NCBI RefSeq assembly: GCF_902713615.1
Contig: NC_052158.1
Span: forward strand, 17,976,546 to 18,040,545
DNA length: 64,000 nt
Source: Scyliorhinus canicula
Taxonomy: Eukaryota
Reading direction: 5' to 3'
The notes under the pieces are model-generated. The model was not told the origin of the DNA. It searched no databases and worked only from the letters and a program-made list of their open reading frames with translations. The position numbers and the translations under genes were made by a program. Positions 2,085-34,547 of this stretch are shown here, piece after piece (positions within the stretch are counted from its first letter, which is position 1; each line of letters starts with the position of its first letter).

Positions 2085-2235
2085 TCTGACTTTATAAAAG
2101 TGAAAAAGCCTCCAGACACAATAAAGGGGTCAGTTTGATTTAATTCCAAAGTTCCTGACACTGAGCGTGTCACTGATCACGTGAAGTGAAATCCAGGAAG
2201 TGGAGCGTTGAGCAGGAATTGACAGTGAAAGAGCG
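2085..2235 (+). promoter_or_regulatory. TRIM copy 1 proximal promoter: IRF-like site, E-box, IRF half-site, ETS site
   Basis: AAAAGTGAAA 2096-2105, TCACGTGA 2177-2184, AAGTGAAA 2184-2191, CAGGAAGTG 2194-2202. The E-box/IRF/ETS core is present upstream of all five copies. Confidence 0.55.
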
Positions 2236-2271
2236 GGAACAGGGAAGGAGAGAGAGACTCTGGGCACTGAG

Positions 2272-5200
2272 ATGGCATCTCCAGATCTCACACAGGAACT
2301 AACCTGTCCCATCTGCCTGGAGATATTCACCCACCCGGTGTCTCTGGAATGTGGACATCATTTCTGCAGCTCCTGCATCTCCCAGAGTTGGCAGAAGGTC
2401 CCGGGAGATGTTTCCTGCCCCCAGTGTCGACAGGTGTTCACCCAGAGGAACGTCAGGCCCGCTCGGACCCTCATTAACATCGTGGAGAAGTTCAGAGAGG
2501 TGAAGGTGACACAGCCACAGGAGGAGTTTTACTGTCAGGAACACGAGGAGAAGCTGAAACTCTTCTGTGAAGTGGAGCAGAGAGCGATCTGTGTGGACTG
2601 CTGGAGTTCAGAACATCAAACTCACAAAGATTTACATATCAAAGAGGCTGTTCACATATACAAGGTATTGGATTTCTGCTGCTGGCGAAGGGAGACAGGG
2701 AAGAGGTGAGGAATGGAGGGAGGGTTGTACAGTGTGGGGAGGGAGAGGGGAGGCAAGAGGGAGTGGGGTAGGGACAGGGAGGGGGAGAGTGCCAGAGGGG
2801 TGATGGTGGAGACATCTTTAAAGATGAACACAAAGCGACCTGTCTGTTGTGTGGGATGTCCAGAGCTCATAAGACGCACAGTGTGATCCCAATAAAGGAG
2901 GCAGCCCAGATATACAAGGTACTGGATCACTGCTACTGACACAGGTAGATGGGGAAGAGGGACAGGGTGTAAGTCACAGAGAGAGGGAGTGTTTGTAGAA
3001 TGAGGGGAGGAGAAGAGAGAGCGGGAGAGACAGGGGTAGGGAAGGGGAGAGGGATGTTGAAAGAGGAGAGGGTTGGAGCATGTAGAGGATTGATTGAGGA
3101 GGGGAATTAACCTGGAGGAGGATAATTGCAATAAACAGAATTAACCCACAGTTTCTACTTTGTTTATTGAGTGTAATCAATGCTGAGAATATCTCCTTCT
3201 CTACCTCACTGGTCTAACTCTTTAATAACAGCAAACCCCTCCAGAAGGTGACAATGATTGTTTCCTTTGACAAACCCATTTGTGTCCTTTCTGTCTCAGA
3301 ACAAGTTAGAAACATCATTGGAAACTGTGCAGAAGCAAATGGACCTCAGTCTTCACAGTAAAAGAGAACGAGAGGATGGGATTTTCCACATGAAGGTAGG
3401 AGAATGTCCTTTAGGCTTTGTGTAAACTTCCCTGTGTTTGTTATTCAGAGTGAGTGAGCTTATCACACGGTCAGAGAGAGAGTTTTACTGAATAAAATGC
3501 TGCTGCTCCAAAGTACACTGTGGGCTGCTCCCTGAACTGCAATATAAGGGAGCGTCTGTAAATTGCAGATTATTATAACAATGTGTAAATGTCTTAATTT
3601 CTCCCTCCAGTCAATCCCATCAATTGATTAAATACATTTTGTCTGTAACTCACTCCCAGGTATCCATTATTCTATATATAAACCATCTGAACTCTTCGAT
3701 TAGATTCCAGTCTGATACTCACTCCCAGGTATCCATTATTCTATATGTCAACCATCTGAATTCCACAAACAGATTGCACAGTGACTCAGCCCTTGATGTC
3801 TATTATTTCATAATTAACCACTGGAATCACTTTACAATGATTGTTTGTAACTCAGTCCCACATACCCAATATTCCATCAAACTGTTCAGCCGGCAGTGAG
3901 CTGTTATTATTTGTTATTCGTCCTGGATATAAATTTTTATCCCTATATCCCAGTGGACAGAGACCAGGGACACTGGGTTTATAAACATTGTTTATTCCGT
4001 TCTGTATTCAATCTGTTCCAGGCTGAAGTTGACAGACTGAGAAATGAAATCAACAGTGAATTTGAAAAGATGCACAAGTTCCTGTTTGAGAAGGAGGAGC
4101 TGATGAAAGCAGAGTTGGAGAGAAAAAGCAATAAAATATTCGAGGAAATGGAGAACAATTTCTCCAAAACCATGGATGAAATGTCTTCTCTTGAAGGAGC
4201 AATAAGAGATCTTAAATCGAGACTGGAGGTACAAGAGGCCCCAGAGTTCCTCAAGGTACAAAATCTCTTTGTCTTGTCCAGTGAAACATTCCAGAGACGG
4301 AGGGCGGGCACTCTGACCTTTAACCTCTGGGTTTGGATTAGGCCTCAGTCTGATTGGTTGGATGATTGTCTCTTTGTGCTGTCAGTAAGGGTCCAATGGG
4401 AAATGAGGTAAGATAATCTCAGTGTGATTCCTATACACAGTGTAACCACGGCACTGATTGACGATTGGTCTCCAAGAGAGCTGGGCTGGGAACTGGAGAT
4501 GTTTACACTGCTGCAGATGGAGTTCTACTGAGATCTGCTGAGGACGGGTTAAAGTGCATTATTGCAGGGGTGATGGAGCTATGGTTAGAGAGATAAGAAT
4601 GGGAGCAGGTGAGGGTAGAACACCCAGCTGGACAACAGCGGAGAGGCGATGGAGGAGGATGGCGTGATCGACCGTGTCAAAGGCTGCAGACAGACCGAGA
4701 ATAATGAGGAGGGAAAGTTTGTAAGGATGGGTTTTTTGGGGAGAGGGGTGAAGATGTAGATTTAAATGAGAGAGAGTCAACACCTGAAGAGATTAAACAG
4801 TTTCCAATCCCAGCTAAAATAGGGACCAGGAGCGGAGGTTGGGAGATTAGTAGTTTTTGGGAATAGGATGGAGGGGACAGGAGGTTGGTCTGATGGACAA
4901 GATGAGCTCCGAGAGGGAATGAAAGGAAAAAGTAAAAGTTATTTTCTAACTGAAATCTTGGTCTCTCAATTTCTACTCGAGATTTACAACAAGAACTCTT
5001 TAATCTGATTCGATCATTTCTATTCTGTTCCTTTCCCCTCAGGATATTCAAGACCTATTGATGAGGTAAGCAGATATAAAGAAACAGTTTTGTGATGTGA
5101 TCACTGCTGTCTCTCTAACACACACTGATTTCCAGACCTGTTTTTACAGGAGTCAGATGGAGTTTCACAAGCCTGGAACTGTCTCCACTCAGTTACCTGT

Positions 5201-8200
5201 GGCTATCGCTGGTGAACCATTCAAATATATCAAAGTGTGGAGGGAAATGAGAGCAGTGATTTCACCAGGTATCATTCTCTGTATATTACTGTCTCCCTGA
5301 TGTTATCCACGTGATTAATGAGGTTTGACACACTGATGAAATGATTAGAAGATCAGAAGGAATAAGAACAGGAGTGGTCCAGCCCAGTGAACCTGCTCTG
5401 ATTTTTGATAAGATCATCTCTGATCTGATTGGGGCCTTTACTCCACTTTCCTGCCTGTCCCAGATGACCCTTAACCCCCCTGTTAATCAACAATCTCTCG
5501 AACTCGATCATGAATCAATGACCCAGCCTCTGCTGCTCTCTGTGGTAGAGAATTCCAAAGACTAATATCCCTCTCCGAGAAGGAATTCCTCCTCATCTCT
5601 GTCTTCAATAGACGGCTCCTTCATTTGATGCTGTGTCACCGACACCTCGATTGGCTCAGAGATCAAACATCCTCCCAGTATCTACCCTGGTGAAGGAATC
5701 CCCTCAGAATGTTATGTTTCAATAAGATCACCTCTTATTCTTCTAAACTCCAGTGAGTACAGACCCAACCAGCTCAACCTTTCCTCATAAGGCAATCCCT
5801 TCATCCCAGGAATCAGCCCAGTGAACCTTCTCTGAACTCTGTCCAATGACAGTCTCTCCCTCCTGATGTAAGGAGATCAGATCTGAACACAGTACTCAAG
5901 CTGCAGTCTCACCAATCCCCTGTAAAGTTGGAGCAAGTCTTCCCTACTTTACACTCCATCCCTTTCCAATAAAGGCCAACATTCCATTTGTTTTCCTCAT
6001 TCCTTGCTGTCCCTGGAGACTAACTTTTAGTGATTGATGTAGAAGGTCCCCCAGATCCCTCTGTACTGCAGCATTCTGCTGTCTCTTTCTATTGAAATAA
6101 TTTGCTGCTTTTCTATTCTTCCTGCCAAGGTGGACAACCTCCCATTTTCCCACATTATACTCCATCTGCTAAATCTTTGTCCACTCACTTAACCGGTCTA
6201 TATCCCTCCGCAGACACTTTGTATCCTCCTCACAACTTCCCAACCTCACTTTGTGGCATCAGTAAATTTGGCTACAGCATATTCGGTTTCTTCATCCAAT
6301 CAGGAATATTGATCATAAATAGTTGTATCCCCATCACTGATCAGTAATCTCGGGAATTTGGAAAGATTACCACCAATGCATCCACTTTCTCTCCAGCCCC
6401 TCCTTTAACATCCTGGGATGCAGGACATCAGGTCCAGGGGACGAGTTGTCTTTAATCCCATCGCTTTTCCAGATACTTTTTCTCTGGTGATCATGATTGT
6501 TTTAAGTTTGTCCCTCCCTTTTCCCTCCTGCTTTTCCCTAACACTGGATGACCCCAGGTGTTGTTCTTTGTATATTGTTGGGCATTTTTCTTTCCCCAGG
6601 TTATAAGAAAACATTTGTTTAACGATATTTTGACATTTCTGAGGGACATTGCCAGACCTCAGCACAGAGCACCGATTGGTCCCCACATGCCCCGTTGTCA
6701 AGACGGATACTCTTCCCCTCACTCCGTATACCAGTTACCATGACTACATTATATCCCCTCTGTGACCAAGGATAGGAACTCCCAACTTAGGCAGACATCA
6801 CCTTCTGTCTCTCCCTCAGCACTTTGCCTTGCTGTGAATGGAATTCAGTTCAGAGAAGTGTGAGGTTAATGTATTGGGAGGGGGAAGATATGACAAGGGA
6901 ATAGACAATAAGTGGTAAGATAGTGAGAGGCGTGGAGGAACAGAGGGAGATTTGAGTTTATGTCCACAGATTCAGGATAGGTGGATAAAGTGGTGACGCT
7001 AACACACCGGATATTTTCCTGTACTGACCACAGAATAGAAAATAAGAGCAGAGAGGTAATGTAGGAACTTTATTAAACATTAGTCTACAGCTAGAGCACT
7101 TTGTATCTTTCTGGTCAGTGTGCTGGAGAGGTTACCGAGGAGATTAGAAATAGAAATAGAAAATCGCTTATTGTCACGAGTAGGCTTCAATGAAGTTACT
7201 GTGAAAAGCCCCTAGTCGCCACACTCCGGCGCCTGTCCGGGGAGGCTGGTACGGGAATCGAACCGTGCTGCTGGCCTGCTTGGTTTGCTTTAAAGGCCAG
7301 CGATTTAGCCCAGTGAGCTAAACCAGCCCAGATTAATGAGGGTGTTGGATGGATCAGAGAATTTGAGTTCTGCGTTATGATTGGATAGATTGGGATTGTT
7401 TTCATTGGATCTGAGAAGGCTGAGGGGAGATTTAATTGAGGTATATAAAATTAGGAGTGTCCAGATAGAGTGGAAAGGAAATCCCGAGTCCCATTGCCTC
7501 GGGGTCCCTGACCAGGGAGAATAGATACAGGGTTAGAGGGAGGAGGATTAAAGGGATTATTTTCACACACAATGTGGTCTGGATCTATGAGTCACAGGTT
7601 GATAGAGGCAGAAACCCTCATAACATTTATAAAGTAATCAGATCTGCATTGAAAGTGCCGTAACCAAAAGAGTTACGAAGCAGAAACTGGAAACCGGGAT
7701 TGGGCTGGAGAATTCTTTTTCAGCCGAATCTCACAGGTTGGTCTGAAATTGCCTCTTCTTATGAATCCCAGAATATTTAAAAAAAAGCAGGTGACCGTTC
7801 GGGCCATTGTGTTCCTGCTAGCTCACTGCAAGATCAACTCACCCAGAGCCATTCCTTCACCTTTTTCTGTGTAGCTCTGCAGATTTAAGTTCTTCAGTTA
7901 ATGATTCAATTCCATATAAAAACTGTGATCCTAAACATTCGCTGTGTGAAAAGGTTTTCCCTCATGCTAATGTGGCTTCTTTTGTCAATCAATTTAAATT
8001 CTGTGTCCTCTGGTTCTCTTCTCTCAGGGGAACCACCTCAGCTTCTCCAATCTGTGTCCGTAACTGAAGTTCCACAGCTCAGGAACCATTGTGGTGAATA
8101 TTTCCTGCAGTCTCTCTAATGCCCTCAAAGTGTGTTGCCCAGATCAGAGTTGAGGGTTAACCAGTGTTTTATACAGATATAACTTTGTCACTCTATTCTG

Positions 8201-11200
8201 TGTTAATAAAGCCTAAGATGCTGCATTCTTTATTAACCACTCTCTCTCCTTGTCCTGTCACCGCTAATTGTGAAATGATATCCTGTGCATCAAGGTTTAG
8301 GTCATTAATTTACATCAGGAAAGTCAGAACCCTTTGAATACCAATGTATATCTATCTTCAGTCTGAACAAGCAACAACTGTCATTCACCCCGTTTCATAT
8401 CCATGTTGCTACTGTCCTCGTTATTCTGTATATTTTCTATGTTTCTGCCTGTTAGGGTGACTGTTCCCCTGTTGCCAGAGACTAGGGAACATACGAGGAG
8501 GTTAAAGGGCAAAACCGTGTATTGAGATATTGAAGTTATTTCTCTGTCATTTAGATGTAAATTTTCCACTGGGATCACTCCTTCCAGCTCTACAGCCCCC
8601 TTGTCCTGACTGAGATCTCGGAGGGGGGTGTAGGGCTGGAGGAGGAGAGCCCACTCCCTTGTCCTGGCTGAGATCTCGGAGGGGGGTGTAGGGCTGGAGG
8701 AGGAGAGCCCACCCCCTTGTCCTGGCTGAGATCTCGGAGGGGTGCTGTAGGGCTGGAGGAGGAGAGCCCACCCCCTTGTCCTGACTGAGATCTCGGAGAG
8801 GGGTGTAGGGCTGGTGGAAGTTACAGAGATACTGACTGGGGGGAATGCGGTGTATACGTTTAAGTTTGAGATATGTCTGGGTCAGAAGGCGATGGAATGG
8901 AATTCCCAGTGGGAATGTAGCTGTTGTCCGTGTTATCTCATCACTGAGTCAGAAAGCTGTAGATTTCTGTCCCATTCCAGAATATGGAGCAGGAAGTCCA
9001 GACTGACAATCCCAGCGCAGTACTGAGGAAGTGGCAGCACGGTGGCCTAGTGATTCGCACAGTTGCTTCTCAGCTCCATGGTCCCAGGTTCGATTCCCCG
9101 CTGGGTCACTGTCTGTGCCGACTCTGCACGTTCTCCGCGTGTCTGTGTGGGTTTCCTCCGGGTGCTCCGGTTTGCTCCCACAGTCCCAAGATGTGCAGGT
9201 GAGGTGGACTGGCCGTGATAAGTTGCCCTTTAGGCCGGTACAGACTTATTGGGCCGAATGGCCTCATTCTGCACTGTACATTCTATGATCTGTGATCTAT
9301 GAAGTGCTGCAGTGTTGGAGGAGCCTCTTTCAGATGAGACTTTACACCTTCTCAGCTGGAGGGCAATGATCCAGTGGCTGGAGTTTGAAGAGGAGGAGGA
9401 GAGCCCACCCCCTTGTCCTGACTGAGATCTCGGAGCGGTGTGTAGGACTCGAGGGCGAGAGCTCAGCCCCTTGTCCTGACTGAGATCTCGGAGGGGGGTG
9501 CAGGGCTGGAGGAGGAGAACCCACCCCCTTTTCCTGACTGAGATCTCGGAGGGGGTATAGGGCTGGAGGAGGAGAGCTTACCCCCTTGTCCTGACTGAGA
9601 TCTCGGAGGGGGGTTTAGGGCTGGAGGAGGAGAGCCCACCCCCTTATCCTGACTGAGATCTCGGAGGGGGGTAGGGCTGGAGGAGGTGACAGAGATAGGG
9701 GGCGCGATTCTCCGCTCCCCACGCTGGGAGGGAGAATCGCGGGAGGGCCGGGTGACTAATTTCACACCCCCCCGGCGCCCCCCGCAATTCTCCCACCCCC
9801 CCGGCTCGGAAAAAGCGCTGCTCGCCATTTTTCACAGCGACCGGCGACTCTCCGACCCGGATGGGCCGAGCGGCCGGCCGTTCGCGACCGTTTCACGGCG
9901 GCGGTAACCACACCTGGTCACTGCCGTCGTGTAATCGCCTTAAGATGCCCGTTTGGGGCTTGTAGGGGGCCTGGTGGGGACTGAGCACCACAACTGTTCT
10001 CGGGAGGAGACAGGCCCACAATCGGTGCCCACCGATGGTCGGGCTGGCGTCTCAATGGGACGCAATATTTCCCCTCCGCCGCCCCGCAAGATCAAGCCCC
10101 CACGTCTTGCGGGGCGGCTGAGGGGAAGACGGCAACTGCGCATGCGCGTCTGACATCACATAGGCGCCGCCGACGCGTCATTCTCGGCGCGCCGCCTTAA
10201 CGCAAGCTTCAAGGCCCAGCAGTTGAAAATAAAGGAGCGCCGCTCCTAGCCCCCCGGGTGGGGGTGAATACGCGCCCAGGATGTGGGCAGTGAGAATTTT
10301 AAGTTCGAGGCATTGCTGGGTTCAAAGCTGATGAGGATCAGTGAGCACTGGGGGGGCTGAAATTATCAACAGGGGACAACCAGTGTCAGATTCCAGTAGA
10401 TTGAGCTCAGGGCGGTGACTGACTTCCTACAACTTGTCTTAACCAAGGTCCTGTACTGGAGGGAGATCTTTATTCTCAGTAAATTGATGCTGATCTGAGC
10501 TGAGTGAACGGGGCTGAGGGAATGGGGAGAAATTTCTTCAGACACTCTGTCCCTGAGCTTCCACAGTTCCTGGGCTGAGGAAAGTGGTGATGTCCCATCA
10601 CCGTCTGCACATGTCTCGTCATTCACTTCTGTTTTTCTCACAGTAACAGCTTCCCAATCATGTTCTCTTCCAGTTCCAGCATCTCTCACCCTGGACCCAG
10701 AGACAGCACACAACAAACTCATCATTTCCCAGGATCTGACTAGTGTGAGGTACGGAAATGAGGAGCAAGATCTCCCAGAACATCCGGGAAGATTTGATAA
10801 ATATGTGTACGTTTTGAGCTCCCAGAGTTTCACATCAGGGAGACACTACTGGGAGGTGGGTCTTGGAAACAAACCTTACTGGATTGTGGGTGTCTGCAGA
10901 GAGTCTGTCAACAGGAAAGGAAATATCACAGAGTCACCTGAGAATGGATTCTGGGTCATCGCCTGGCTTTCTGGCGGCAAATCATTGAAATTCCTGGATG
11001 TCATCTCGCAGCTAAAAGTGAAACCCCGGAAGTTGGGAATTTACCTGGATTATGAGGGAGGACAGGTATCATTTTACGATGCTGAGGACATGTCTCACCT
11101 GTACACCTTCACTGACACATTCACCGAGAAACTCTACCCCATCTTTAATCCCTGTAATAATAAGTCTGGTAATAACTCTGAGCCACTCACACTGCTCTCT

Positions 11201-11206
11201 GGGTAA
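2272..11206 (+). CDS. TRIM E3 ligase copy 1 (RING-Bbox2-CC-PRY/SPRY, TRIM39/TRIM27/A33-like), intact, about 465 aa
   Basis: Exons 2272-2664, 3300-3395, 4022-4255, 5043-5065, 5150-5268, 10674-11206; all introns GT-AG; 1398 nt in frame. C3HC4 RING, B-box2, LTLDPETA, GRHYWEV and LDYEGG motifs. Confidence 0.92.
3641..3790 (+). repeat. 69-bp minisatellite, about 2 units (copy 1 intron 2)
   Basis: Unit gtctgtaactcactcccaggtatccattattctatatataaaccatctgaacccctcgattagattcca. Confidence 0.85.
5340..6520 (-). mobile_element. Decayed CR1-clade LINE 3' fragment in intron 5 (also about 21960-23740, 38213-39290, 51950-53110)
   Basis: MEYNVGKWEVVHLGRKN...VQRDLG...NGMLAFI is typical CR1 ORF2 C-terminal sequence. 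Confidence 0.8.
6830..7720 (+). mobile_element. Highly decayed CR1-like LINE fragment (present in each unit)
   Basis: CR1-like 3' motifs such as ggctgaggggagatttaattgaggtatataaaatt and aacatttataaag. Confidence 0.55.
7147..7329 (-). mobile_element. tRNA-derived SINE, copy 1-specific insertion
   Basis: Minus-strand A/B boxes (ggtttagctcactgg, ggttcgattcc), tttcta-type tail, TSD agatta at 7141-7146 and 7330-7335. The site is empty in copies 2-4. Confidence 0.85.
8596..8830 (+). repeat. 58-bp GC-rich minisatellite, about 4 units
   Basis: Unit ccccttgtcctgactgagatctcggaggggggtgtagggctggaggaggagagccca. Confidence 0.9.
9033..9300 (+). mobile_element. V-SINE/HE1-like SINE (paralogous copy at 41650-41915)
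   Basis: tRNA-like head ggcagcacggtggc...ggttcgattcc plus V domain gtgggtttcctccgggtgctccggttt. Confidence 0.85.
9391..9690 (+). repeat. 58-bp minisatellite, about 5 units
   Basis: Same unit as the array at 8596. Confidence 0.9.
9700..10277. mobile_element. Non-autonomous Harbinger-type MITE (right TIR partly deleted)
   Basis: Left TIR gggcgcgattctccgctccc, 3-bp TSD agg, homologous to 42259-42878. Confidence 0.75.
10674..11206 (+). CDS. TRIM copy 1 terminal exon, PRY/SPRY (B30.2) domain
   Basis: Acceptor ttccag at 10668-10673; VPASLTLDPETA...GRHYWEV...LDYEGG...EKLYP; stop ends at 11206; AATAAA at 11504-11509. Confidence 0.93.
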
Positions 11207-12499: not shown

Positions 12500-15400
12500 T
12501 CCTGATGTCCAAGAGGCTGATTTGACAGAAGCTGTTGGTATTGAGCTGCGGCAGTCTGTGGCACCATTCAGTTAGCTCATAACTGATCCATATCCGAAAT
12601 GTAGACCAGAACGTCACGTGATGGGAGCGTGCCAAAATTCCCTGGATGTGGGAGTCATGGCCGAGCATCCCAATCAGACTGTGATGGCTGGCCACTGGGC
12701 CTGAACACTGCCGGAGGCAACACCAGACACACAGCAGCCGAGATCTGAACACCCAGGGGATGGGCCCCAACACCGGGGACATGTCCATGGCCGGAGGGTG
12801 GGTGAGTTCGATGGGGAGGGGACCAGCACCCGGTCCAGGTACAGTTATGTGCAGGAGTCAGGGGTACAGGTCTGGGGTCCGTTGAGGGGTTGGGGGGGGG
12901 GGGGGGGGGGGGCGTTGGGCTCGATCGGGATGTGTGGAATCTCGCAGGCCACAGCCGACATGTCCATCCGACAGGTCACGGGAGCCCTGTTTGCCCAGGT
13001 GGAAAACTACCTCAAGTTTGACAAGGACCCAGCCGATCAAAATGCCCAGGCAGCAGGATTCTCCGCTGTCGCCGGGATGCCCCAGGTCCAGGGGCTGATA
13101 GACTGCACGGATGTCGCCTTGCGTGCACCAGGCCAGCTGGGAGTGCCCTACATCAACAGGAAGAGGTTCCACTCCCTGAACGTGGAACTCGTGTCTGATC
13201 ACCACATGCAGATCATGCACGTGTCTGCACGCTTCCCAGGGAGTGTGCACGACAGCTAAATCCTGGGGTAGTCAGACGTTCCCGGCCTCTTTGAGGACCA
13301 CCCCAGGATGGCGGCTGGCTCTTGGGGATCATGGGTACCCGCTGAGGACCTGGCTAATGACACCAGTATGGAGACCCGGTACAACGAGGCTAATGTGGCC
13401 ACTCGAGCTGCAATGGAGTGGTCCATCGGACTGCTTCAATGCTCTCCCGATGCCTCGGCCGGTCTGGTGATGCCCTGCACACCCCCTGGAGGGTCACCCG
13501 CTTTGTGGTGGTCTGATGTGTTCTCCACAACCTGACACAGGAGCAGGGTGAAGGTAGGGATGAGGAACCTGTGGCCAACTCCGAGGTGGAGGTGACAAGG
13601 ACGAGGGTGATGAGGAGGCGCTGGACCAGCAGGGGTTGAAGGACCAGCCGGAGGCTGCAGGACAGGCAGCAGCGGCCAGGATCCGGCCAGCCTGGAGGGC
13701 CAGGAAGTCCCAAATACCCACTTCACATCGGGTGTGGCCTCTTTCATCATCGCAACCTTCCTCCCATTTCTCACTCACCCAGGGTATCACATCAGGGTGC
13801 TGGAGCTGTGTCGGCACCGTCAGCCGGTCACTGTCGAGGACAGAAGGTGATGATAACCCACAGAGAGCTGAGCGTAGGTGCTCCTCAATGTAGTCTGACC
13901 CCCGGCCACTCTGCTGAGTGCTCGCCCAGACCCATCACCTGGTTGGTGTGTGTGTGGGGTGGGGGGGGGGGGGGTGTTGGTGCATGTCTGGAGAGATGGG
14001 CTAAGGGTTCGGAGGTCACCCACATTGCGGAGGAAAGTGATAGAGGTGTTATACTGGTTGTGGTGAACGGTTTATAATGTTTCACAGGCGTCCAACAGTG
14101 CCCAACCCTCCCGATGGTACCGCCCCACTCTCCCTTCCACCCACTCACACCCCCTACCCACCCCCCCTCTCTCTCTCTCTCTCTCTCTCCCCCCCCCCCC
14201 CCCCCCCCCCCCCCAGTGCCCTCTCAGTGACCCTCAATGTGCTTAGCCTTCCTTGTTCTGCCGCTACGGTGTATCCCCAGGATTATAAATCAGAGTTGGA
14301 GGCAGCCAGCTGCTTACCATGCCCCGTGACCTTCGATGCCCCTGACAGGCATCCTCTGGGGGCTCTGTGGCCAGAGGACCCCGGTGACTTGTCAGCGCCA
14401 CATGCACGGCCCTGTCCCTTGTGCTGACCCCAAGACGCGGCCTCATCAGATGAGTGAAACCCGGGGGAGCTGGTGGGCCACCATCCCCAATTCAGGGTAG
14501 GGGTCTGGGTTGGTACCCAGCGACCCTTCCTCCTGGTCGGTGCCCATAGGGCACTGCGGCTCGAGCCCCTCCGCTGTCTGGCCCTGCCAGCCCTGGCACC
14601 CCGATGTCTGCACCATCCTGTTGACGCCCTCGGCGATGTTCCTCAGTGACTGGGCAATGCTCTGCCGTGCCCTGGCAATGCCCACCCGCGACTGGGACAA
14701 GCTCCGCCGCGTCTCGGATATTCCCATCTGAGAGTGGGACATGACCCGCAAAACCTCATCACGTTCAGTTTGATATTGGATCACATCCCACAGCAAGGCA
14801 GACATATTGCCGAAGCCCTCAGCCATGACCGTTACAAACTGCGTGATGCCTTGGACACCTTCATTACTGCTGCTCACGTTGTGCACCAGGCTCTCCACTG
14901 CGGTCGCCACCCTAGCAGTGTTGGCCTCAGTGCCACCCATTACCGGCGACATCTTCTGTGACCAGAGCCTCTGGTACTCCTCCAATTGGCTATGGTGCTG
15001 CTGGAGAGTTGCTGACATCTCCCTCTGAATGTCTCGAACGTTCCCCAACATCTCCATCAGCTCCGGGATAGCCTGGTCATAGACTCAGCATCAGGCTGGG
15101 AACCAGCTGGGTCCTGGGATCCATCAGACCTCAGGCTGCTGTCTCTCCTGATGGACATCAGCAGCTGTGTGATGCTCACCACATTGTGCCCCAGAGGCCT
15201 GACCGCTAACGTTGCCCAGCGAGGTGTGTGTTTCTGCGCTGGTAGCGGGTGGGGATGGCAGTGTGCCGCGTCGATTGTGGTATCCACGGAGCTGTCCTCC
15301 AAGGTGGTCTCATGGGAGGCAGGGGACGGGACCACCCCAGATGGCAGGGTACTGTCGGCTAGAGGACCTGTGGGAGAATGGACACGTGGTCAATGGGAGG

Positions 15401-16381
15401 GATGGAGGACCTGAGGGAGAATGGACACGTGGTCAATGGGAGGGATGGAGGACCTGAGGGAGAATGGACACGTGGTCAATGGGAGGGATAGATGACCTGA
15501 GGGAGAATGGACACGTGGTCAATGGGAGGGATGGAGGACCTGAAGGAGAATGGACAAGTGGTCAATGGGAGGGATAGATGACCTGTGGGAGAATGGACAC
15601 GTGGTCAATGGGAGGGATGGAGGACCTGTGGGAGAATGGACACGTGGTCAATGGGAGGGATGGAGGACCTGAGGGAGAATGGACACGTGGCCAATGGGAG
15701 GGATGGAGGACCTGAGGGAGAATGGACACGTGGACAATGGGAGGGATGGAGTACCTGAGGGAGGATGGACACATGGGCAATGGGAGGGATGGAAGACCTG
15801 AGGGAGAATGGACACGTGGTCAATGGGAGGGATGGAGGACCTGAGGGAGAACGGACACGTGGTCAATGGGAGGGATGGAGGACCTGAGGGAGAACGGACA
15901 CGTGGTCGATGGGAGGGATGGAGGACCTGCGAGAGAATGGACATGTGGTCAATGGGAGGGATGGAGGACCTGAGGGAGAATGGAAACGTGGTCAATGGGA
16001 GGGATGGAGGACCTGCGGGAGAACGGACACGTGGTCAATGGGAAGGATGGAGGACCTGCGAGAGAATGGACATGTGATCAGTGGCATTGAGGGGTCAGCG
16101 TGTGTGACAGGGCATCATCAGGCATATGTGTGGCCCACAGTAGTTGGGGTGGGGGTGTTAAAGAAGGGAGATGGGGGTGAAGGGTAGGGATTGAAGGGAG
16201 GGTTGCGGTGATAGATGCTCGCTTGGGGGCGAAAAGGTCTTGGGAAGGAGGGGGGTAGGGGTAGTGTCCACTCACCCGTGCTGCCCAGTGTAGATCTTTG
16301 ACCTTCTTGCGGCAATGGAGGCCAGTCCTCCTGGTCACGCTTCCCGAGCTGACAACCACTGCCACTTCATCCCAGGCAGCA
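12500..16381. mobile_element. Decayed PIF/Harbinger DNA transposon: DDE transposase on +, Myb/SANT gene on -
   Basis: + strand GLIDCTDV, NRKRFHSLNVELV, ARFPGSVHDS then TAA at 13257-13259, LGDHGYPL..WLMTP. Minus strand SGSVTRRTGLHCRKKVKDL. Confidence 0.85.
15361..16078 (+). repeat. 43-bp minisatellite, about 16-17 units, most containing CACGTG
   Basis: Unit ggaggacctgagggagaatggacacgtggtcaatgggagggat. Confidence 0.95.
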
Positions 16382-18311: not shown

Positions 18312-21300
18312 ATGGCATCTCCAGATCTCACACAGGAACTAACCTGTCCCATCTGTCTGGAGATATTCACCCACCCGGTGTCTCTGGAATGTGGACATAA
18401 TTTCTGCAGCTCCTGCATCTCCCAGAGTTGGCAGAAGGTCCCGGGAGATGTTTCCTGCCCCCAGTGTCGACAGGTCTTCACCCAGAGGAACGTCAGGCCC
18501 GCTCGGACCCTGAGTAACGTCGTGGAGAAGTTCAGAGAGGTGAAGGTGACACAGCCACAGGAGGAGTTTTACTGTCAGGAACACGAGGAGAAGCTGAAAC
18601 TCTTCTGTGAAGATGAACACAAAGCGATCTGTCTGGTGTGTGGGATGTCCAGAGCTCATAAGACGCACAGTGTGATCCCAATAAAGGAGGCAGCCCAGAT
18701 ATACAAGGTACTGGATCACTGCTCCTGGCACAGGTAGATGGGGAAGAGGGACAGGGTGTAAGTCACAGAGAGAGAGAGTGTTTGTAGAATGTGGGGAGGG
18801 GAAGAGAGAGCGGGAGAGACAGAGATAGGAAAGGGGAGAGGGATGTTGAAATAGGAGAGGGTTGAAGCAAGTAGAGGATTGATTGAGGAGGGGAATTAAC
18901 CTGGAGAAGGATATTTGCAATAAACAGAATTAACCCACAGCTTCTACTTTGTTTATTGAGTGTAATGAATCCTGAGAATATCTCCTTCTCTACCTCACTG
19001 GTCTAACCCTATTTAAAAACAGCAAAACCCTCCAGAAGGTGACAATGATTGTTTCCTTTGACAAACCCATTTGTGTCCTTTCTGTCTCAGAACAAGTTAG
19101 AAACATCATTGGAAACTCTGCAGAAGCAAATGGACCTCAGTCTTCACAGTAAAAGAGAACGAGAGGATGGGATTTTCCACATGAAGGTAGGAGAGTGTCC
19201 TTTAGGCTTTGTGTAAACTTCCCTGTGTTTGTTATTGAGAGTGAGTGAGCTCCTCACACAGTCAGAGAGAGAGTTTTACTGAATAAAATGCTGCTGCTCT
19301 AAAGTACACTGCGGGCTGCTCCCTGAACTGCAATATAAGGGAGCGTCTGTAAATTGCAGATTATTATGACAGTGTGAAAATGTATTATTTTCTCTCTCAA
19401 GCCAATCCCATCGATTGATGAAATAAATCATGTCTGTAACTCACTGCCGGAGATCTATTATTCTCTCTATAAACCATCTGAACCCCTCGATTAAATTCCA
19501 GTCTGTAACTCACTCCTAGGAATCCATTGTTCTATTTTTAAACCATCTGAAACCCTCGATTAGACTCCAGTCTGTAACTCACTCCCAGGTATCCATTATT
19601 CTATATATAAACCATCTGAACCCCTCGATTAGATTCGAGTCTGTAACTCACTCCCAGGTATCCATTATTCTATATATAAACCATCTGAACCCCTCGATTA
19701 GACTCCAGTCTGTAACTCACTCCCAGGCATCCATTATTCTATATATAAACCATCTGAACCCTTCGATTAGATTCCAGTCTGTAACTCACTCCCAGGTATC
19801 CATTATTCCATATATAACCATCTGAACCCCTCGATTAGATTCCAGTCTGTAACTCACTCCCAGGTGTCCATTATTCTATATATAAACCATCTGAACCCCT
19901 CGATTAGATTCCAGTCTGTAACTCACTCCCAGATATCCATTATTCGTTATATAAACCATCTGAACCCCTCGATTAGATTCCAGTCTGTAACTCACTTCCA
20001 GGTATCCATTATTCGTTATATAAACCATCTGAACCCCTCGATTAGATTCCAGTCTGTAACTCACTCCCAGGTGTCCATTATTCTATATATAAACCATCTG
20101 AACCCCTCGATTAGATTCCAGTCTGTAACTCACTCCCCGGTATCCATTATTCGTTATATAAACCATCTGAACCCCTCGATTAGATTCCAGTCTGTAACTC
20201 ACTCCCAGGTATCCATTATTCTATATATAAACCAACTGAACCCCTCGATTAGATTCCAGTCTGTAACACACTCCCAGGTATCCATTATTCTCTATATAAA
20301 CCATCTGAACCCCTCGATTAGATTCCAGTCTGTAACCTACTCCCAGGTATCCATTATTCTATTTTCAACCATTTGAACCCTTTGATTATATTCTAGTCTG
20401 TAACTCTCTCCTTAATATTCTTATTTAGGATTAACCATTGGAATCACTTTACAATGTTTGTTTGTAACTCACTCCCACATAGCCAATATTCCATCAAACT
20501 GTTCAGCCGGCAGTGAGCTGTTATTATTTGTTATCCTTGCTGGATATAAATTTTTATCCCTATATCCCAGTGGACAGAGACCAGGGACACTGGGATTATA
20601 AACATTGTTTATTCCGTTCTGTATTCAATCTGTTCCAGGCTGAAGTTGACAGACTGAGAAATGAAATCAACAGTGAATTTGAAAAGATGCACAAGTTCCT
20701 GTTTGAGAAGGAGGAGCTGATGAAAGCAGAGTTGGAGAGAAAAAGCAATAAAATATTCGAGGAAATGGAGAACAATTTAACCAAAACCATGGATGAAATG
20801 TCTTCTCTTGAAGCAGCAATAAGAGATCTTAAATCGAGGCTGGAGGTACAAGAGGCTCCAGAGTTCCTCAAGGTACAAAATCTCTTTGTCTTGTGCAGTG
20901 AAACATTCCAGAGACTGAGGGCGGGCACTCTGACCTTTAACCTCTGGGTTTGGTTTAGGCCTCAGTCTGATTGGTTGGATGATTGTCTCTTTGTGCTGTC
21001 AGTAAGGGTCCAATGGGAAATGAGGTGAGATAATCTCAGTGTGATTCCGATACACAGTTTAACCACGGCACTGATTGATGATTGGACTCCGAGAGAGCTG
21101 GGCTGGGAACTGGAGATGTTTACAATGCTGCAGATGGAGTTCTACTGAGATCTGCTGAGGATGGGTGAAAGTGCATTATTGCAGGGGTGATGGAGATATG
21201 GTTAGAGAGATAAGAATGGGAGCGGGTGAGGGTAGAACACCCAGCTGGACAACAGTGGATAGGCGGTGGAGGAGGATGGTGTGATCGACCGTGTCAAAGG

Positions 21301-21887
21301 CTGCAGACTGACCGAGAATAATGAGGAGGGAAAGTTTGTAAGGATGGGTTTTTTAGGGCGATGGGTGATTATGTAGATTTAAATGACAGAGAGAGACAAC
21401 AGCTGAAGAGATGAAACAGTTTCCAATCCCAGCTAACATGGGGACCAGGAGGGGAGGTTGGGAGATCAGTAGTTTTTGGGAATAGGATGGAGGGGACAGG
21501 AGGTGGGTCTGATGGACAAAATGAGCTGCGAGAGGGAATGAAAGGAAAAAGTAAAAGTTATTTTCTAATTGAAATCTTGGTCTCTCAAATTCTACTCGAG
21601 ATTTACAACAAGAACTCTTTAATCTGACTCGATCATGTCTATTCTGTTTCTTTCCCCTCAGGATATTCAAGACCTGTTGATGAGGTAAGCAGGTATAAAG
21701 AAACAGTTTTGTGATGTGATCACTGCTGTCTCTCTAACACACACTGATTTCCAGACCTGTTTTTACAGGAGTCAGATGGAGTTTCACAAGCCTGGAACTG
21801 TCTCCACTCAGTTACCTGTGGATATCGCTGGTGAACCAGTCAAATACATCAAAGTGTGGAGGGAAATGAGAGCAGTGATTTCACCAG
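18312..21887 (+). pseudogene. TRIM copy 2: intact RING-Bbox-CC exons, PRY/SPRY exon deleted (truncated gene or pseudogene)
   Basis: Exons 18312-18707, 19091-19186, 20639-20872, 21662-21684, 21769-21887 are open and GT-AG. At about 26871 the pre-exon-6 intron joins directly to post-gene sequence. Confidence 0.85.
19432..20410 (+). repeat. 69-bp minisatellite, about 14 units (copy 2 intron 2)
   Basis: 23-aa periodicity in ORF 19864-20376. Confidence 0.95.
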
Positions 21888-22184
21888 GTATCATTCTCTG
21901 TATATTACTGTCTCCCTGCTGTTATCCACGTGATTAATGAGGTTTGACACACTGATGAAATGATTAGAAGATCAGAAGGAATAAGAACAGGAGTGGTCCA
22001 GCCCAGTAAACCTGCTCTGATTTTTGATAAGATTATGTCTGATCTAATTGTGGCCTTTACTCCACTTTCCTGCCTGTCCCAGATGACCCTTAACCCCGTT
22101 GATCAACAATCTATGGAACTTGGTCATGAATCAATGACCCAGCCTCTGCTGCTCTCTGTGGGAGAGAATTCCAAAGACTAATAT

Positions 22185-22794
22185 TGTGAATGCGTGTCTA
22201 ATTCACTTGTCTCTCAGTCCGGAAGAAACGATCTCGAACACGTCCGTACTTCAGAATATTCTTTATTGCGATCGGGCCTCTCTCTAGGTATTCCAAAGAA
22301 ACACCTCTCTGAGAGTGCCAAAGTCTTGCTCAAAGCACCCCTCTTTTATATGTTTTTTAAGGGGTTGTCCCTTATATTCACTTGAACTTGCCCACACTTC
22401 AAAGCATAGTTTGGTTATTACAATAGTTCCAGTACATGATTTTACAGACTTTGAGGTTATCTATTGGCACATGATAATGTAGCAGTTTTAGCTTAATTAA
22501 TAAATGTTAGCTATAGTTGCAAGCGGCTCCCATATTTCATATCTCGTCATCCGGCCATGCGCCTTGTTTCTCAAGGCTGTTTGGCTCATAGTCATGAGTC
22601 GGTTCACGACTTCAAATATCACTCCCTTCTCTGAGCATCCTTCAATGGCTTCAATAACACATTCCTCTACTCTGAGCAAATCCATTCTCCTTCAATGGCT
22701 TCAATAACACATTCTTTTAATTTGTGATTTTCCACTAATGTATCCCGGTCATTCTGGCTTGTTCTAGCTATTAACCCTTGCTTCACATCCTCAC
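22185..22794 (-). mobile_element. Solo LTR, copy 2-specific, antisense in intron 5
   Basis: About 610 bp absent from the other copies. Ends tgtgaatg...catcctcac, flanked by tat. Minus-strand TATAAAA near 22344-22350 and AATAAA at 22262-22267. Internal 26-bp direct repeat. Confidence 0.7.
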
Positions 22795-24141
22795 TATCCC
22801 TCTCCGAGAAGGAATTCCTCCTCAACTCTGTCTTCAATAGAGGCCCCTTCATTTGATGCTGTGTCACCGACACCTCGATTGGCCCAGAGATCAAACATCC
22901 TCCCAGCATCGACCCTGGTGAAGGAATCCCCTCAGAATGTTATGTTTCAATAAGATAACCTCTTATTCTTCTAAACTCCAGTGAGTACAGACCCAACCAG
23001 CTCAACCTTTCCTCATAAGACAATCCCTTCATCCCAGGAATCAGCCCAGTGAACCTTCTCTGAACTGTGTCCAATGAGAGTCTCTCCCTCCTGATGTAAG
23101 GAGATCAGATCTGAACACAGTACTCAAGCTGCAGTCTCACCAATCCCCTGAAATGTTGGAGCAAGTCTTCCCTACTTTACACTCCATCCCTTTTCCAATA
23201 AAGGCCAACATTCCATTTGTTTTCCTCATTCCTTGCTGCACCTGGACACTAACTTTTAGTGATTGATGTACAAGGTCCCCCAGATCCCTCTGTACTGCAG
23301 CATTCTGCTGTCTCTTTCTATTGAAATAATTTGCTGCTTTTCTATTCTTCCTGCCCAGGTGGACAACCTCCCATTTTCCCACATTATACTCCATCTGCTA
23401 AATCTTTGTCCACTCACTTAACCGGTCTATATCCCTTCGCAGACATTTTGTATCCACCTCACAACTTCCCGACCTAACTTTGTGGCATCAGTAAATTTGG
23501 CTCCAGTATATTCGGTTTCTTCATCCAATCAGGAATATTGATCATAAATAGTTGTATTCCCATCAGTGATCAGTAATCTCGGGAATTTGGAAATATTACA
23601 ACCAATGCATCTACTTTCTCTCCAGCCCCTCCTTTAAAATCCTGGGATGCAGGACATCAGGTCCAGGGGACAAGTTGCCTTAAGTCCCATCAGTTTTCCA
23701 GATATTTTTTCTCTGGTGATCATGATTGTTTAAAGTTTATCTCTCCGTTTTCCTTCCTGCTTTTCCCGAACACTGGATGACACCAGGTGTTGTTCTCTGT
23801 ATATTGTTGGGCATTTTTTCTTTCCCCAGGTTATCGGAAAACATTTATTTAACGATATTTTGAAATTTCTTAGGGACATTGCCAGACCTCAGCACAGAGC
23901 ACTGATTGCCCCCCACATGCCCCGTTGCTGAGACTGATACACTTCCCCTCACTCCGTACACCAGTTACCATGACTACATTATATCCCCTCTGTGACCAAG
24001 GACAGGAACTCCCAACTTAGGCAGACTTCACCTTCTGTCTCTCCCTCAGCACTTTGTCTTGCTGTGAATGGAATTCAGTTCAGAGAAGTGTGAGGTTCAT
24101 GTATTGGGAGGGGGAAGATATGGCAAGGGAATGGACAATAA

Positions 24142-24336
24142 TAATAGGGGCTGGTTTAGCTCACTCGGCTAAATCACTGGCTTTTAAAGCAGACCAAGCA
24201 GGCCAGCAGCACGGTTCGATTCCCGTACCAGCCTCCCCAGACAGGCGCCGGAATATGGCGACTAGGGGTTTTTCACAGTAACTTCATTGAAGCCTACTCG
24301 TGACAATAAGCGATTTTCATTTCATTTTTCATTTTT
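24142..24336 (+). mobile_element. tRNA-derived SINE, copy 2-specific (same family as 7147-7329)
   Basis: A/B boxes, tttca-type tail, TSD caataa. Confidence 0.85.
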
Positions 24337-25895
24337 CAATAAGTGGTAAGATAGTGAGAGGTGTGGAGGAACAGAGGGAGATTTGAGTTTATGTCCACAG
24401 ATTCAGGACAGGTGGAAAAAGTGGTGATGATAACACACCGGATATTTTCCTGTACTGACCACGGAATAGAAAATAAGCGCTGGGAGGTAATGTCGGAACT
24501 TTAGAAAACACGTTAGTCCACAGCTAGAGTACTTTATATCTTTCTGGTCAGTGTGTTGGAGAGGTTACCGAGGAGATTAATGAGGGTGTTGGCTGGTTCA
24601 GAGAACTTGAGTTCTGCGTTATGATTGGATAGACTGGGGTTGTTTTCATTGGATCAGAGGAGGCTGAGGGGAGATTTAATTGAGGTGTATAAAGTTAGGA
24701 GTGTCCAGATAGAGTGGAATGGAAATCCCGAGTCCCATTGCCTCGGGTTCCCTGATCAGGGAGAATAGATACAGGGTAAGAGGGAGGAGGGTTAAAGGGA
24801 TTATTTTCACACACACTGTGGTCTAGATCTAGGAGTCACAGACTGAAAGGTTGATAGAGGCAGAAACCCTCATAACATTTATAAAGTAATCAGATCTGCA
24901 CTGAAAGTGCCGTAACCAAAAGAGTTACGGAGCAGAAACTGGAAACCGGGATTGGGCTGGAGAATTCTATTTCAGCCGAATCTCACATATTGCTCTGAAA
25001 TTGCCTCTTTTTGTGAATTCCAGAATGTTTAAAAAAACAAGAGGTGACCATTCGGCCCATTGTGTTCCTGCTAGCTCACTGCAAGACCAACTCACCCAGG
25101 GCCATTCCTTCACCTTTTTCTCTGTCGCTCTGCAGATTTAAGTTCTTCAGTTAATGATTCAATTCCATATGAAAGCTGTGATTGAATCTGATTCCACCAC
25201 AGTGCATTCCTGATCCTAAACACTCGCTGTGTGAAAAGGATTTTCCTCACGTTAATATGGCTTCTTTTGTCAATCAGTTTAAATTCTGTGTCCTCTGGTT
25301 CTCTTCTCTCAGTAGAACCACCTCAGCTTCTCCAATCTGTGTTCGTAACTGAAGTTCCTCCTCCAAGGAACCATCGCGTTGATTGTTTCCTGCACACTCT
25401 CTCTAATGCCCTCACATCCTCCCTCAAAGTGTGTTGCCCATATCAGAGTTGAGGGTTAACCAGTGTTGTATACAGATATAACTTTGTCACTCTATTCTGT
25501 GTTAATAAAGCCTAAGATGCTGCATTCTTTATTAACCACTCTCTCTCCTTGTCCTGTCACCGCTAATTGTGAAATGATATCCTGTGCATCAAGGTTTAGG
25601 TCATTAATTTACATCAGGAAAGTCAGAACCCTTTGAATACCAATGTATATCTATCTTCAGTCTGAACAAGCAACAACTGTCATTCACCCCGTTTCATATC
25701 CATGTTGCTACTGTCCTCGTTATTCTGTATATTTTCTATGTTTCTGCCTGTTAGGGTGACTGTTCCCCTGTTGCCACGGAGACCAGGGAACATACGAGGA
25801 GGTTAAAGAGCAAAACCGTGTATTGAGATATTGAAGTTATTTCTCTGTCATTTAGATGTCAATTTTCCACCAGGGTCACTCCTTCCAGCTCATCA

Positions 25896-26240
25896 ACCCC
25901 CTTGTCCTGACTGAGATCTCGGAGGGGGGTGTAGTGCTGGAGGAGGAGAGCCCACCCCCTTGTCCTGACTGAGATCTCGGAGGGGGGTGTAGGGCTGGAG
26001 GAGAAGAGCCCACCCCCTTGTCCTGACTGAGATCTCGGAGTGGGGTGTAGGGCTGGAGGAGGAGAGCCCACCCCCTTGTCCTGACTGAGATCTCGGAGTG
26101 GGGTGTAGGGCTGGAGGAGGAGAGCCCACCCCCTTGTCCTGACTGAGATCTCGGAGGGGGTGTAGGGCTGGAGGAGGAGATCCCACCCCCTTGTCCTGGC
26201 TGAGATCTCGGAGGGGGGTGTAGGGCTGGAGGAAGTTACA
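25896..26240 (+). repeat. 58-bp minisatellite, about 6 units
   Basis: Same unit as the array at 8596. Confidence 0.9.
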
Positions 26241-27494
26241 GAGATACTGGCTGGGGGGGGGGGGAATGCCGTGTAGACATTTACGTTTGAGATATGTCTG
26301 GGTCAGAAGGCGATGACGGTCAGTGAGAATGGGGTCTTGGGAACGGGGAAGGTTAGGAGGATCATGGGGGGGGGGGGGGGGATGTGGTTGGTGATGGGTG
26401 TATGGGTCTTGGTGGAAGTTATGACTGTGGGCAGCAGAATTTGGATGATCTCACGCTTCCGTTTCGGGTTCCACGTTGAAAATAAATGAACGCACATCCA
26501 GACTCCCCCTTGACTGTTGTGCACAAAGCAGTGAGACAGTTAATGTTTCAATCCCATTCACAAATTGAAAAACGTGTCAACACTGTCCAAAAAATGTCAC
26601 AACAGGCTGGACACAGGGCGGTGACCGAGTTCCTACAATTTGGCTTCACCGAGGTCCTGTACTGGAGAGAGATCTTTATTCTCAGTGAATTGATGCTGAT
26701 CTGTGCTGGGTGAATGGAGCTGAGGGAATGGGGAGGAATTTCTTCAGACACTCTGTCCCTGAGCTTCCACAGTTCCTGGGCTGAGGGAAGGGGTGATGTC
26801 CCATCACCGTCTGTACACGTCTCGTCATTCACTCCTGTTTTTCTCACAGTAACAGCTTCCCAATCATGTTCCCATCCTATCCCTTCATTCCCTTTGTACT
26901 CAGGAATATATCGCTCTCTGTGTTGAATATACTCACTGACATCTCATCGAGAGAGAGGATTCCAAAGATTCACAACTCTCTCTGAGGGAAGGAATTTTTC
27001 CTCATCTCAGTCTTAAATGGACGACCCCTTATCCTGATTCTGTGACCCCCTCGTTCTAGACCAGTCTCAGCATCTACCCTGTCAGGGTCTCTGAGAATTG
27101 TATTTGTTTCAATAGGATCATCTCTTATTCTTCTGAACTTCAAAGAATATAGAGCCATCCAACTCAATCCTTCCTCATTTCGGAAAACCCTTTCATTGCA
27201 AGAATCAATTCCGTGAACCTTCATTGCTCCCTCTAAGGTAAGTATATGTTTCCTCAGGTAAGGAGACTGAAACTGTCCACAGTCCTCCAGCTGTGTCCAC
27301 ACTCAATCCCTGTTACATTGCAGCGAGACTTATTCTCTTATACTTCAACCCCATTGTAATAAAGGCTAAGATACCATTAACCTCCCTAATTGTTCACTGT
27401 ATCTGCTTGTTAACTTTCTCTGCTTCATGGATACACAAATCCCTCTGATTCCCAACATTTACAAGTCTCTCATCTTTTAAAAATATCCTGAGAT

Positions 27495-31670: not shown

Positions 31671-31705
<35 letters not shown>

Positions 31706-34514: not shown

Positions 34515-34547
34515 GTGTGACGGACAAATGATTGTCCATCATTTGTG

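Follow-up and report, generated by a model that had tools for sequence, protein, structure and literature searches.

The question raised by this locus is how one gene of a tandem array came to contain two versions of the same half-exon, and whether the protein that it encodes is a new one. The stretch of DNA that was analyzed (the window) consists of 64,000 nt of the genome of the catshark Scyliorhinus canicula (contig NC_052158.1, positions 17,976,546 to 18,040,545 of the forward strand), and it includes five copies of a gene from the 'zinc-binding protein A33-like' TRIM array. In the first of them, copy 1, exon 1 is altered in the part that encodes B-box2. The data are best explained, with a probability of about three in four, if copy 1 is a recombinant between two types of genes of this array, which are called A and B here, with one illegitimate junction at the trinucleotide AAG, and with the A-type half of the B-box left stranded behind it. 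Copy 1 is then either a gene that moved from A to B type, or a B-type 5′ part fused to an A-type body, with the scar of the event kept.

The comparison of the five copies showed that copy 1 alone diverges after ...TTCTGTGAAG (position 2572), while copies 2-5 are without the 251 extra bases. Past 2572 copy 1 continues with 31 codons, VEQRAICVDCWSSEHQTH...HIYK, which are followed by GT at 2665, in place of the 32 codons ending in ...IYK in the native version. The extra piece is exactly 251 nt long, and it can be placed either at 2573-2823 or at 2570-2820, because AAG is present at both 2570-2572 and 2821-2823. Besides an in-frame half B-box and the GT at 2665, it contains intron-like sequence of about 156 nt. 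The native half then occupies 2824-2918, followed by its donor GT (2919-2920), and it is 93/96 identical to the other copies. These observations bear out what the initial annotation had read from the sequence, namely that copy 1 departs after 2572 with an in-frame insert of about 250 bp flanked by AAG on both sides, that the native half is stranded in intron 1, and that an in-frame stop is located at 2707-2709, which is TGA and closes the open reading frame (ORF) 2272..2709. The native sequence quoted there does resume at the right place, but the stranded half of copy 1 differs from it at three residues (I>T, V>L, V>L). The features of the 5′ part of copy 1 are the following:

2272 to 2572, + strand: part of exon 1 common to all copies, comprising start codon, RING and the first B-box2 half (C-x2-H-x7-C), from translation and Pfam; 97-100% identical to copies 2, 4 and 5
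2570 to 2572, + strand: left AAG microhomology, the last position where copy 1 equals the A-type copies, from sequence comparison
2573 to 2664, + strand: second half of B-box2 in its B-type form, with 31 codons (from 2572), core CVDCWSSEHQTH, C-x2-C-x4-H-x2-H, from translation and protein matches
2665 to 2823, + strand: start of B-type intron 1, about 156 nt, ending in AAG at 2821-2823, 67-72% identical to the native intron; weak homologous donor AAG/GTATTG at 2664/2665
2665 to 2705, + strand: 41-nt exon extension, its donor GAG/GTGAGG at 2705/2706 joined to the exon 2 acceptor at 3299/3300, from a contig of the RNA run X9 (see below)
2824 to 2918, + strand: A-type second half of B-box2, stranded and now within the intron (frame from 2823), donor GT at 2919-2920, 93/96 identical to copies 2-5
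3300 to 3395, + strand: exon 2, 96 nt, with a premature TAG at 3307-3309 if the 2705 donor is used, from reading frames and the X9 contig

Tandem arrays with copies that are 95-99% identical are prone to misassembly, and the insert could in principle have arisen when reads of two paralogues were chimerically joined. For this reason the contigs of two DNA data sets from different studies (P1 and P2; run X1 from 2024 and run X2 from 2019) were compared with the window over 2200-3420. In X1 a single contig covers 2543-2838, which includes the left junction, the whole insert and the beginning of the stranded half, while in X2 the same path is covered by overlapping contigs at 2543-2652, 2623-2799 and 2774-2850. 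The X1 and X2 contigs start exactly 30 nt ahead of the first insert-specific base, as 31-mer graphs predict, and the left junction is present in an RNA contig as well. Because the junctions are spanned by DNA contigs of two independent studies, an assembly artefact is very unlikely. The depth of these contigs was about 16-19 over the B-type exon versus about 50-100 over the shared exon sequence, which suggests that a minority of the family copies have the B-type exon, contig depths not being copy numbers. Two further details were noted in these data. At position 2690 both DNA runs have A, while the window and the RNA contig have G, and one X2 contig has 45 unrelated letters before 2774, as from a second context, an allele or a paralogue, which shares the end of the B-type intron fragment.

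The source of the insert was considered next to that of its surroundings. The insert is 67-69% identical (blastn) to the native half-exon and intron start, and a gapped global alignment of its intron part gave 72%, with several indels. The flanks of copy 1 match the other copies at 95-99% identity, as compared to only 67-72% for the insert against the native stretch, and the insert was therefore not formed in place. A local tandem duplication of about 250 nt in copy 1, after which the first unit diverged, would account for two units that are homologous, adjacent and in the same orientation, but the units differ by about 30%, as compared to 1-5% for the copy 1 flanks against the sister copies, and the first unit is 31/31 identical to the B-type half of other genes, so that we give this explanation practically no weight. 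As had been claimed initially, the window itself holds no donor, because nothing within its 64 kb is closer to the insert than the native stretch.

The relatives of the insert were reached stepwise. A library-wide search with exon 1 gave two proteins with a similar second half, one from Callorhinchus and one from a stingray; these led to a Cetorhinus protein, and this in turn to the set of shark proteins. In S. canicula itself, the B-type half of copy 1 is matched at 31/31 residues by XP_038672972.1 and by XP_038672708.1, and at 30/31 residues by XP_038672728.1, and the genes of all three proteins are located on the same chromosome as copy 1. The matches in other sharks are 28/31 in Mustelus asterias, 26-27/31 in Cetorhinus and Carcharodon, and 24/31 in Pristiophorus. 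The proposal that the insert came from a divergent paralogue is therefore well founded, the match being one at the protein level. On the other hand, the further claim that copy 1 had acquired a novel chimeric B-box2 with new partners does not agree with these data, because the same composite is the normal B-box of conserved genes in at least five shark species. A one-off graft of this kind has in its favor that the structure is real, that the switch point lies inside the B-box, and that the differing residues are placed, by the register of the zinc ligands, at the dimer and trimer contacts W117, L118, E120, R121, T130 and L132 of the TRIM5alpha B-box2 (PMC4936894). However, three other S. canicula genes and Mustelus have this composite B-box as well, lamniform sharks and a sawshark have close variants of it in which the first half is unchanged, and the in-frame splice is absent from the RNA contig, which together make the graft improbable. 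As judged from these alignments, copy 1 appears to have switched between two existing types, with nothing new at the level of the protein.

These comparisons point to two old types of the second B-box half, namely the A type, which has the usual class IV TRIM form, and the B type, which has the core CVDCWSSEHQTH and is one residue shorter. The A type is present in S. torazame, Mustelus, Cetorhinus and Heptranchias, and the first B-box half as well as the start of exon 2 are identical in A and B types in every case compared. The difference in length is located in the zinc loop between the fifth ligand (Cys) and the sixth (His), which has four residues in the B type (C-WSSE-H) and five in the A type (C-GMSRA-H). 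The canonical B-box2 pattern is C-x2-H-x7-C-x7-C-x2-C-x5-H-x2-H, and the B type departs from its five-residue Cys-His spacing while all eight ligands are present. The initial annotation was thus correct that the zinc ligands are kept, as all four of this half are there, but their spacing is C-x2-C-x4-H-x2-H rather than that with x5. Because all eight ligands are present and the x4 loop is conserved in several shark species, this loop is a variant and not a broken finger.

The island formed by this half has a history that differs from that of the sequence around it. Its identity is 81-90% within a type across shark orders, as compared to 48-58% between the types in one species, while outside the island copy 1 (B type) and XP_038672709.1 (A type) have an identity of 98% over the N-terminal 100 residues and of 99% over the coiled coil. 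In a tree built without the island, a lamniform clade (support 99/99) and a Scyliorhinus clade (98/98) were obtained, within which the A and B types were interspersed, and in the tree from the island only, A was split from B at 97/96. Forcing the B type into one clade in the former was rejected (delta log-likelihood 307, P-value of the approximately unbiased [AU] test 1.5e-46), and so was grouping by species in the latter (AU P-value 3e-6); it counts against these figures that the A and B groups were named after the alignment had been inspected, so that the P-values are descriptive, although the effect is very large. The pattern would be explained if the island, about 31 codons with the adjoining intron start, had existed in two forms since before the shark orders split, while the sequence outside it was kept nearly identical within each species by recombination.

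The left edge of the island differs between lineages, as it is located at codon 101 in Scyliorhinus and Mustelus and later, at CV[V/D]C, in lamniforms. In the Pristiophorus japonicus protein UniRef100_UPI00398E4FE3, residues ~96-140 are of B type on the left (CVDCWSSEHQTH) and of A type on the right (NVIPIK...), which makes it a within-island recombinant; its length of 961 aa suggests a read-through model of two array units. Shifting island edges together with such a mosaic are what would be expected from repeated conversion with varying end points. A read-through model is also present in S. canicula, where XP_038672973.1 (1156 aa) contains a B-type unit at residue 94 followed by an A-type unit at residue 583. 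Because this one model holds both units, genes of the B type and the A type adjoin in that order, and A-type and B-type proteins have adjacent accession numbers in Cetorhinus and Mustelus. It was also observed that XP_038672708.1 and XP_038672709.1 are annotated as isoforms X1 (B) and X2 (A) of one gene, with differing exons 1-4 and common 3′ exons. Most likely they represent the first exons of two adjacent array units, and not alternative splicing of one exon.

The recombination that gave rise to copy 1 would have joined a B-type half exon and about 156 nt of its intron, via the 3-nt AAG, to an A-type gene at codon 101. The left junction is invisible because A- and B-type genes are nearly identical upstream of this codon. 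The 5′ flank of copy 1, which is homologous to that of copy 4 back to about 1407, and its first 100 codons are closest to this A-type copy, and in the 3′ flank, copies 2-4 are closer to one another than to copy 1 by 1-3%. The event was probably recent relative to the split of the A and B types, because the stranded half is nearly identical to working A halves. The placement of copy 1 as an outgroup that retained an ancestral tandem was rejected, as its upstream sequence is nested among those of the A-type copies (97.8% identity to copy 4 over 503 nt, and up to 99.2%).

Two routes to this product can be considered. In route (a), an A-type gene broken at codon 101 would have been repaired through invasion of a B-type copy via the shared upstream sequence, copying of about 250 nt, and end joining. 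In route (b), a single illegitimate join would have connected intron 1 of a B-type gene to codon 101 of the A-type gene that follows it, with loss of the DNA between them. A simple two-ended ectopic gene conversion adds no length, while here 251 nt were added and the native half was kept downstream. The out-of-register junction does have microhomology, AAG at 2570-2572 and 2821-2823, though 3 nt alone are weak evidence. Homology-initiated repair closed by end joining is a known kind of event (review PMC4888836), and it resembles copy 1, as do template switches at stalled forks (FoSTeS) and microhomology-mediated break-induced replication (MMBIR), in that one side is in register while the other is out of register at a 3-nt microhomology, and in that a short local duplication of homologous sequence results. 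On the other hand, a plain deletion with one microhomology join would give the same product if a B-type gene is located directly upstream of an A-type gene. Hence, the one-ended conversion or template switch put forward initially is reasonable and agrees with the AAG join, but a single illegitimate join between B and A fits equally well, and, with the flanks leaning slightly both ways, we place even odds on the two routes. It weighs against the proposed recombination that its parent and donor are known at the protein level only, so that routes (a) and (b) are not separable.

The contig depths also bear on whether the event belongs to copy 1. The B-plus-A tandem could be older, present in all or most B-type copies of the genome, and spread by array duplication. 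This is consistent with the unbroken X1 contig at 2543-2838, which has a depth of 18.8, about a fifth of the roughly 100 summed over the shared exon, as would correspond to about 4 B-type copies among some 20, and with the fact that low-depth branches (~3) of X1 start only past 2838; in X2 a second sequence context joins at 2774. However, the X2 depth falls from 16.1 in the B exon to 8.3 in the copy-1-like intron and 3.8 at the right junction, as would fit some four B-type exons with this junction in one of them, the identity of the stranded half to working A halves is still 97%, and contigs cannot give copy numbers. An older tandem is less likely than an event in copy 1 itself.

To describe what copy 1 can express, the reading frames following from its three possible exon 1 donors were computed. 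The donor at 2664 gives an intact ORF of 465 aa with canonical splice sites throughout, the frame from the 2918 donor stops at codon 146, and the donor at 2705/2706 causes a frameshift with a stop at codon 148, which is the TAG in exon 2 at 3307-3309. The donor strengths were compared using a rough splice-site matrix, which scored the 2705 donor at 6.2, the 2664 donor at 0.5 and the 2918 donor at 0.3; on this matrix GAG/GTGAGG at 2705 is near the consensus, while the homologous donors AAG/GTATTG and AAG/GTACTG are weak.

The splicing was then followed in X9, a run that was guessed to be RNA, and whose GT..AG joints confirm that it is spliced RNA. The sole X9 contig over the B-type half, with a depth of 5.7, covers 2543-2703 (cut +2, which is 2705) and is connected by a GT..AG joint to exon 2 at 3300. 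The A-type exon 1 of other copies is joined 2918>3300 (joint 2916>3298, cut +2) with a depth of 42.7. The joint 2664>3300 was absent among the X9 contigs, this being the one RNA assembly examined, and no X9 contig covers 2733-2814. In about 17 runs that are likely RNA, 7-8 of the 20 sampled words over 2556-2840 were present, which fits transcription of the B-type exon and does not separate the 2664 from the 2705 donor. The initial annotation had stated that the insert brings its own splice donor; the GT at 2665 is indeed there and is used in the NCBI model, but it is weak, and its joint to exon 2 is absent from the RNA contig. It had also reckoned with the junctions 2664>3300 and 2918>3300 as alternatives in copy 1, while in X9 the first was not seen, the B-type exon 1 was spliced 2705>3300, and the second came from other A-type copies. 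Skipping of the B half, which would give an A-type message from copy 1, was rejected, as none of the four possible cut positions offers a GT-AG pair, and a splice between GT (2572) and AG (2823) would, as read from the sequence, shift the frame.

These data suggest that the output of copy 1 is mostly a frameshifted message of 147 codons, with the in-frame 465-aa B-type protein making up at most a minor share. Under the usual 50-55-nt rule, the message from the 2705 donor would be an expected target of nonsense-mediated decay. Several points speak against this view of the product. The NCBI model XP_038672739.1 uses the 2664 donor, and the downstream exons of copy 1 are all intact, which fits a working gene as well as a recent lesion. 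Moreover, the splicing is documented by a single contig, from a single run that was guessed to be RNA; minor isoforms are lost from contigs, and the X9 contig may stem from another B-type copy with the same intron start. We therefore place about even odds on copy 1 being mostly unproductive, and a productive isoform may be made via the 2664 donor.

It follows that the insert may also be regarded as a disabling lesion only, with copy 1 as a young pseudogene like copies 2, 3 and 5 and its 2705-donor transcripts frameshifted. Its agreement with the X9 joint at 2705>3300, with no joint at 2664 and a stop at codon 148, with the near-consensus 2705 site next to the weak 2664 site, and with the three visibly broken copies among the five of the window is balanced by the intact state of all six exons and splice sites of copy 1, by the use of an equally weak homologous donor in the A-type copies despite better-scoring decoys downstream, and by the in-frame form modelled by NCBI, the RNA support being one contig from one run. 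The chances of this explanation are about equal on either side, and it concerns the fate of copy 1, next to its proposed origin as an A/B recombinant.

Copy 1 is already annotated in RefSeq as XP_038672739.1, which equals the copy 1 model except for 10 aa at one alternative acceptor, and whose gene span of 8,935 nt corresponds to 2272-11206. The copy 1 model is also 93% identical to XP_038672709.1 ('zinc-binding protein A33-like', Scyliorhinus canicula), with the matching part of which exons 2-5 align; the assignment of the coiled coil is a prediction from the sequence. The remaining exons of copy 1 are the following:

4022 to 4255, + strand: exon 3, 234 nt, predicted coiled coil, from alignment; a loose end of X9 behind 3396 matches the start of exon 3
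5043 to 5065, + strand: exon 4, 23 nt, from alignment
5150 to 5268, + strand: exon 5, 119 nt, from alignment
10674 to 11206, + strand: last exon, PRY/SPRY with the stop codon, from Pfam; the NCBI acceptor is 30 nt further upstream

The five gene copies were defined by + strand matches of a 23-nt anchor from exon 1 at 2550, 18590, 35517, 48183 and 62003, with none expected by chance, and repeat families spaced by 12.7-16.9 kb corroborate their tandem arrangement. The copies belong to class IV TRIM genes, with the order RING-B-box2-coiled coil-PRY/SPRY, and according to Pfam exon 1 encodes RING and B-box, and the last exon PRY/SPRY. In copy 1 the RING at residues 12-52 scored 50.4 bits with zf-C3HC4_4 and 46 bits with zf-RING_UBOX, and the last exon scored 79.4 bits with SPRY and 31.7 bits with PRY. 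Against a zf-B_box cut-off of 24.1 bits, the B-type copy 1 reached 39.1-41.6 bits and the A-type copy 4 reached 45.6-48.1 bits.

The three visibly broken copies in the window are copies 2, 3 and 5. Exon 1 of copy 5 has in-frame stops at 61857-61859 and 61983-61985, which are codons 45 and 87 from the ATG at 61725, and because of these two stop codons copy 5 is a pseudogene despite its 96% identity to the family protein. Copy 3 (35407-35634) is without the first ~56 codons in + orientation, and an inverted RING-coding piece is located about 700 nt upstream of it (34498-34705, minus strand). For copy 2, tblastn with the family protein over 21886-34498 gave no PRY/SPRY exon. Among other elements of the window, the gene copies differ widely in the number of units of a 69-bp minisatellite in intron 2 (approximately 3559-3778, 19345-20471, 36248-36754 and 48932-50200), a 43-bp minisatellite is present at 15228-16215 and 29670-30270, and an ORF at 110-802, just upstream of copy 1, resembles a retroviral or retrotransposon integrase.

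Taken alone, copy 1 adds one scar of recombination to a birth-and-death array of immune genes; events of this kind are known, and the gene is already annotated. The scar represents one physical way in which a gene can change its type, and it shows how such arrays shuffle parts rather than how a new protein is made; the competing 2705 donor is in turn a concrete case of recombination altering the choice of a splice site. Of more interest is a by-product to which copy 1 points, the old two-state island in the B-box of an array that is otherwise homogenized, as two versions of the B-box have stayed distinct across shark orders while the remainder of the genes was homogenized. Full-text literature searches gave no description of the shark array or of the B-box dimorphism. 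As a tentative interpretation, the second half of B-box2 could be an old two-state cassette kept by selection, with the types serving as two assembly groups that do not co-polymerize, and with copy 1 caught in the act of switching. If this were true, one array could run two separate lattices, or could avoid poisoning by broken copies. Were the A and B versions to control co-assembly, they would add to TRIM arrays a new layer of specificity beyond the PRY/SPRY loops.

A system to compare for such assembly is TRIM5alpha, where the oligomer interface of B-box2 consists of three layers (Wagner et al. 2016; PMC4936894). The top layer contains Glu102 and Lys103, the middle one Trp117 with Leu105, Leu106, Leu118 and Leu132, and the bottom one Glu120 and Arg121, with a hydrogen bond ascribed to Thr30 in the text and T130A listed in the table of mutants; these contacts are needed for the hexagonal lattice, and their mutation abolishes or weakens restriction (PMC4936894). 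When the zinc ligands are used as the register, and not a structure, the shark A/B island would cover the equivalents of TRIM5alpha residues 117-132. In this alignment the A and B types would have V and D, respectively, in place of L118, GM versus W minus one residue in place of E120/R121, V and D in place of T130, and P and H in place of L132, while the position of the Trp is V in both shark types. The shark genes are not TRIM5 orthologues, and their likeness to the assembly of TRIM5alpha is an analogy drawn from sequence. By this analogy, the functional idea of the initial annotation is reasonable for the A/B dimorphism as a whole, and not for copy 1 as a novelty.

Among the class IV TRIM genes, the shark genes resemble the A33, Xnf7, TRIM39, TRIM21 and TRIM41 group, with which they have in common the order of domains and the exon plan, in which exon 1 encodes RING and B-box, exons 2 and 4 have 96 nt and 23 nt, respectively, and the last exon encodes PRY/SPRY. 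The A-type B-box is closest to the B-boxes of TRIM41, TRIM39, TRIM21 and Xnf7 (E 6e-12 to 2e-8), and in the best PDB match it reached E 6e-12 (TRIM41), as compared to 3.6e-7 for the B type. The B-type half differs from class IV B-boxes by the zinc loop that is one residue shorter, by a Trp right after the second Cys, and by the poorer match to solved B-boxes; the nearest similar cores were found in cartilaginous fishes only, in the Callorhinchus and stingray proteins. The shark array is also similar to immune multigene arrays in which concerted evolution goes together with a protected, diverged island, as here too the flanks group by species and the island by type. The shark island is, in contrast to the diversity of TRIM arrays that is usually reported in the ligand-binding PRY/SPRY loops, one half of a zinc finger in the scaffold of the protein.

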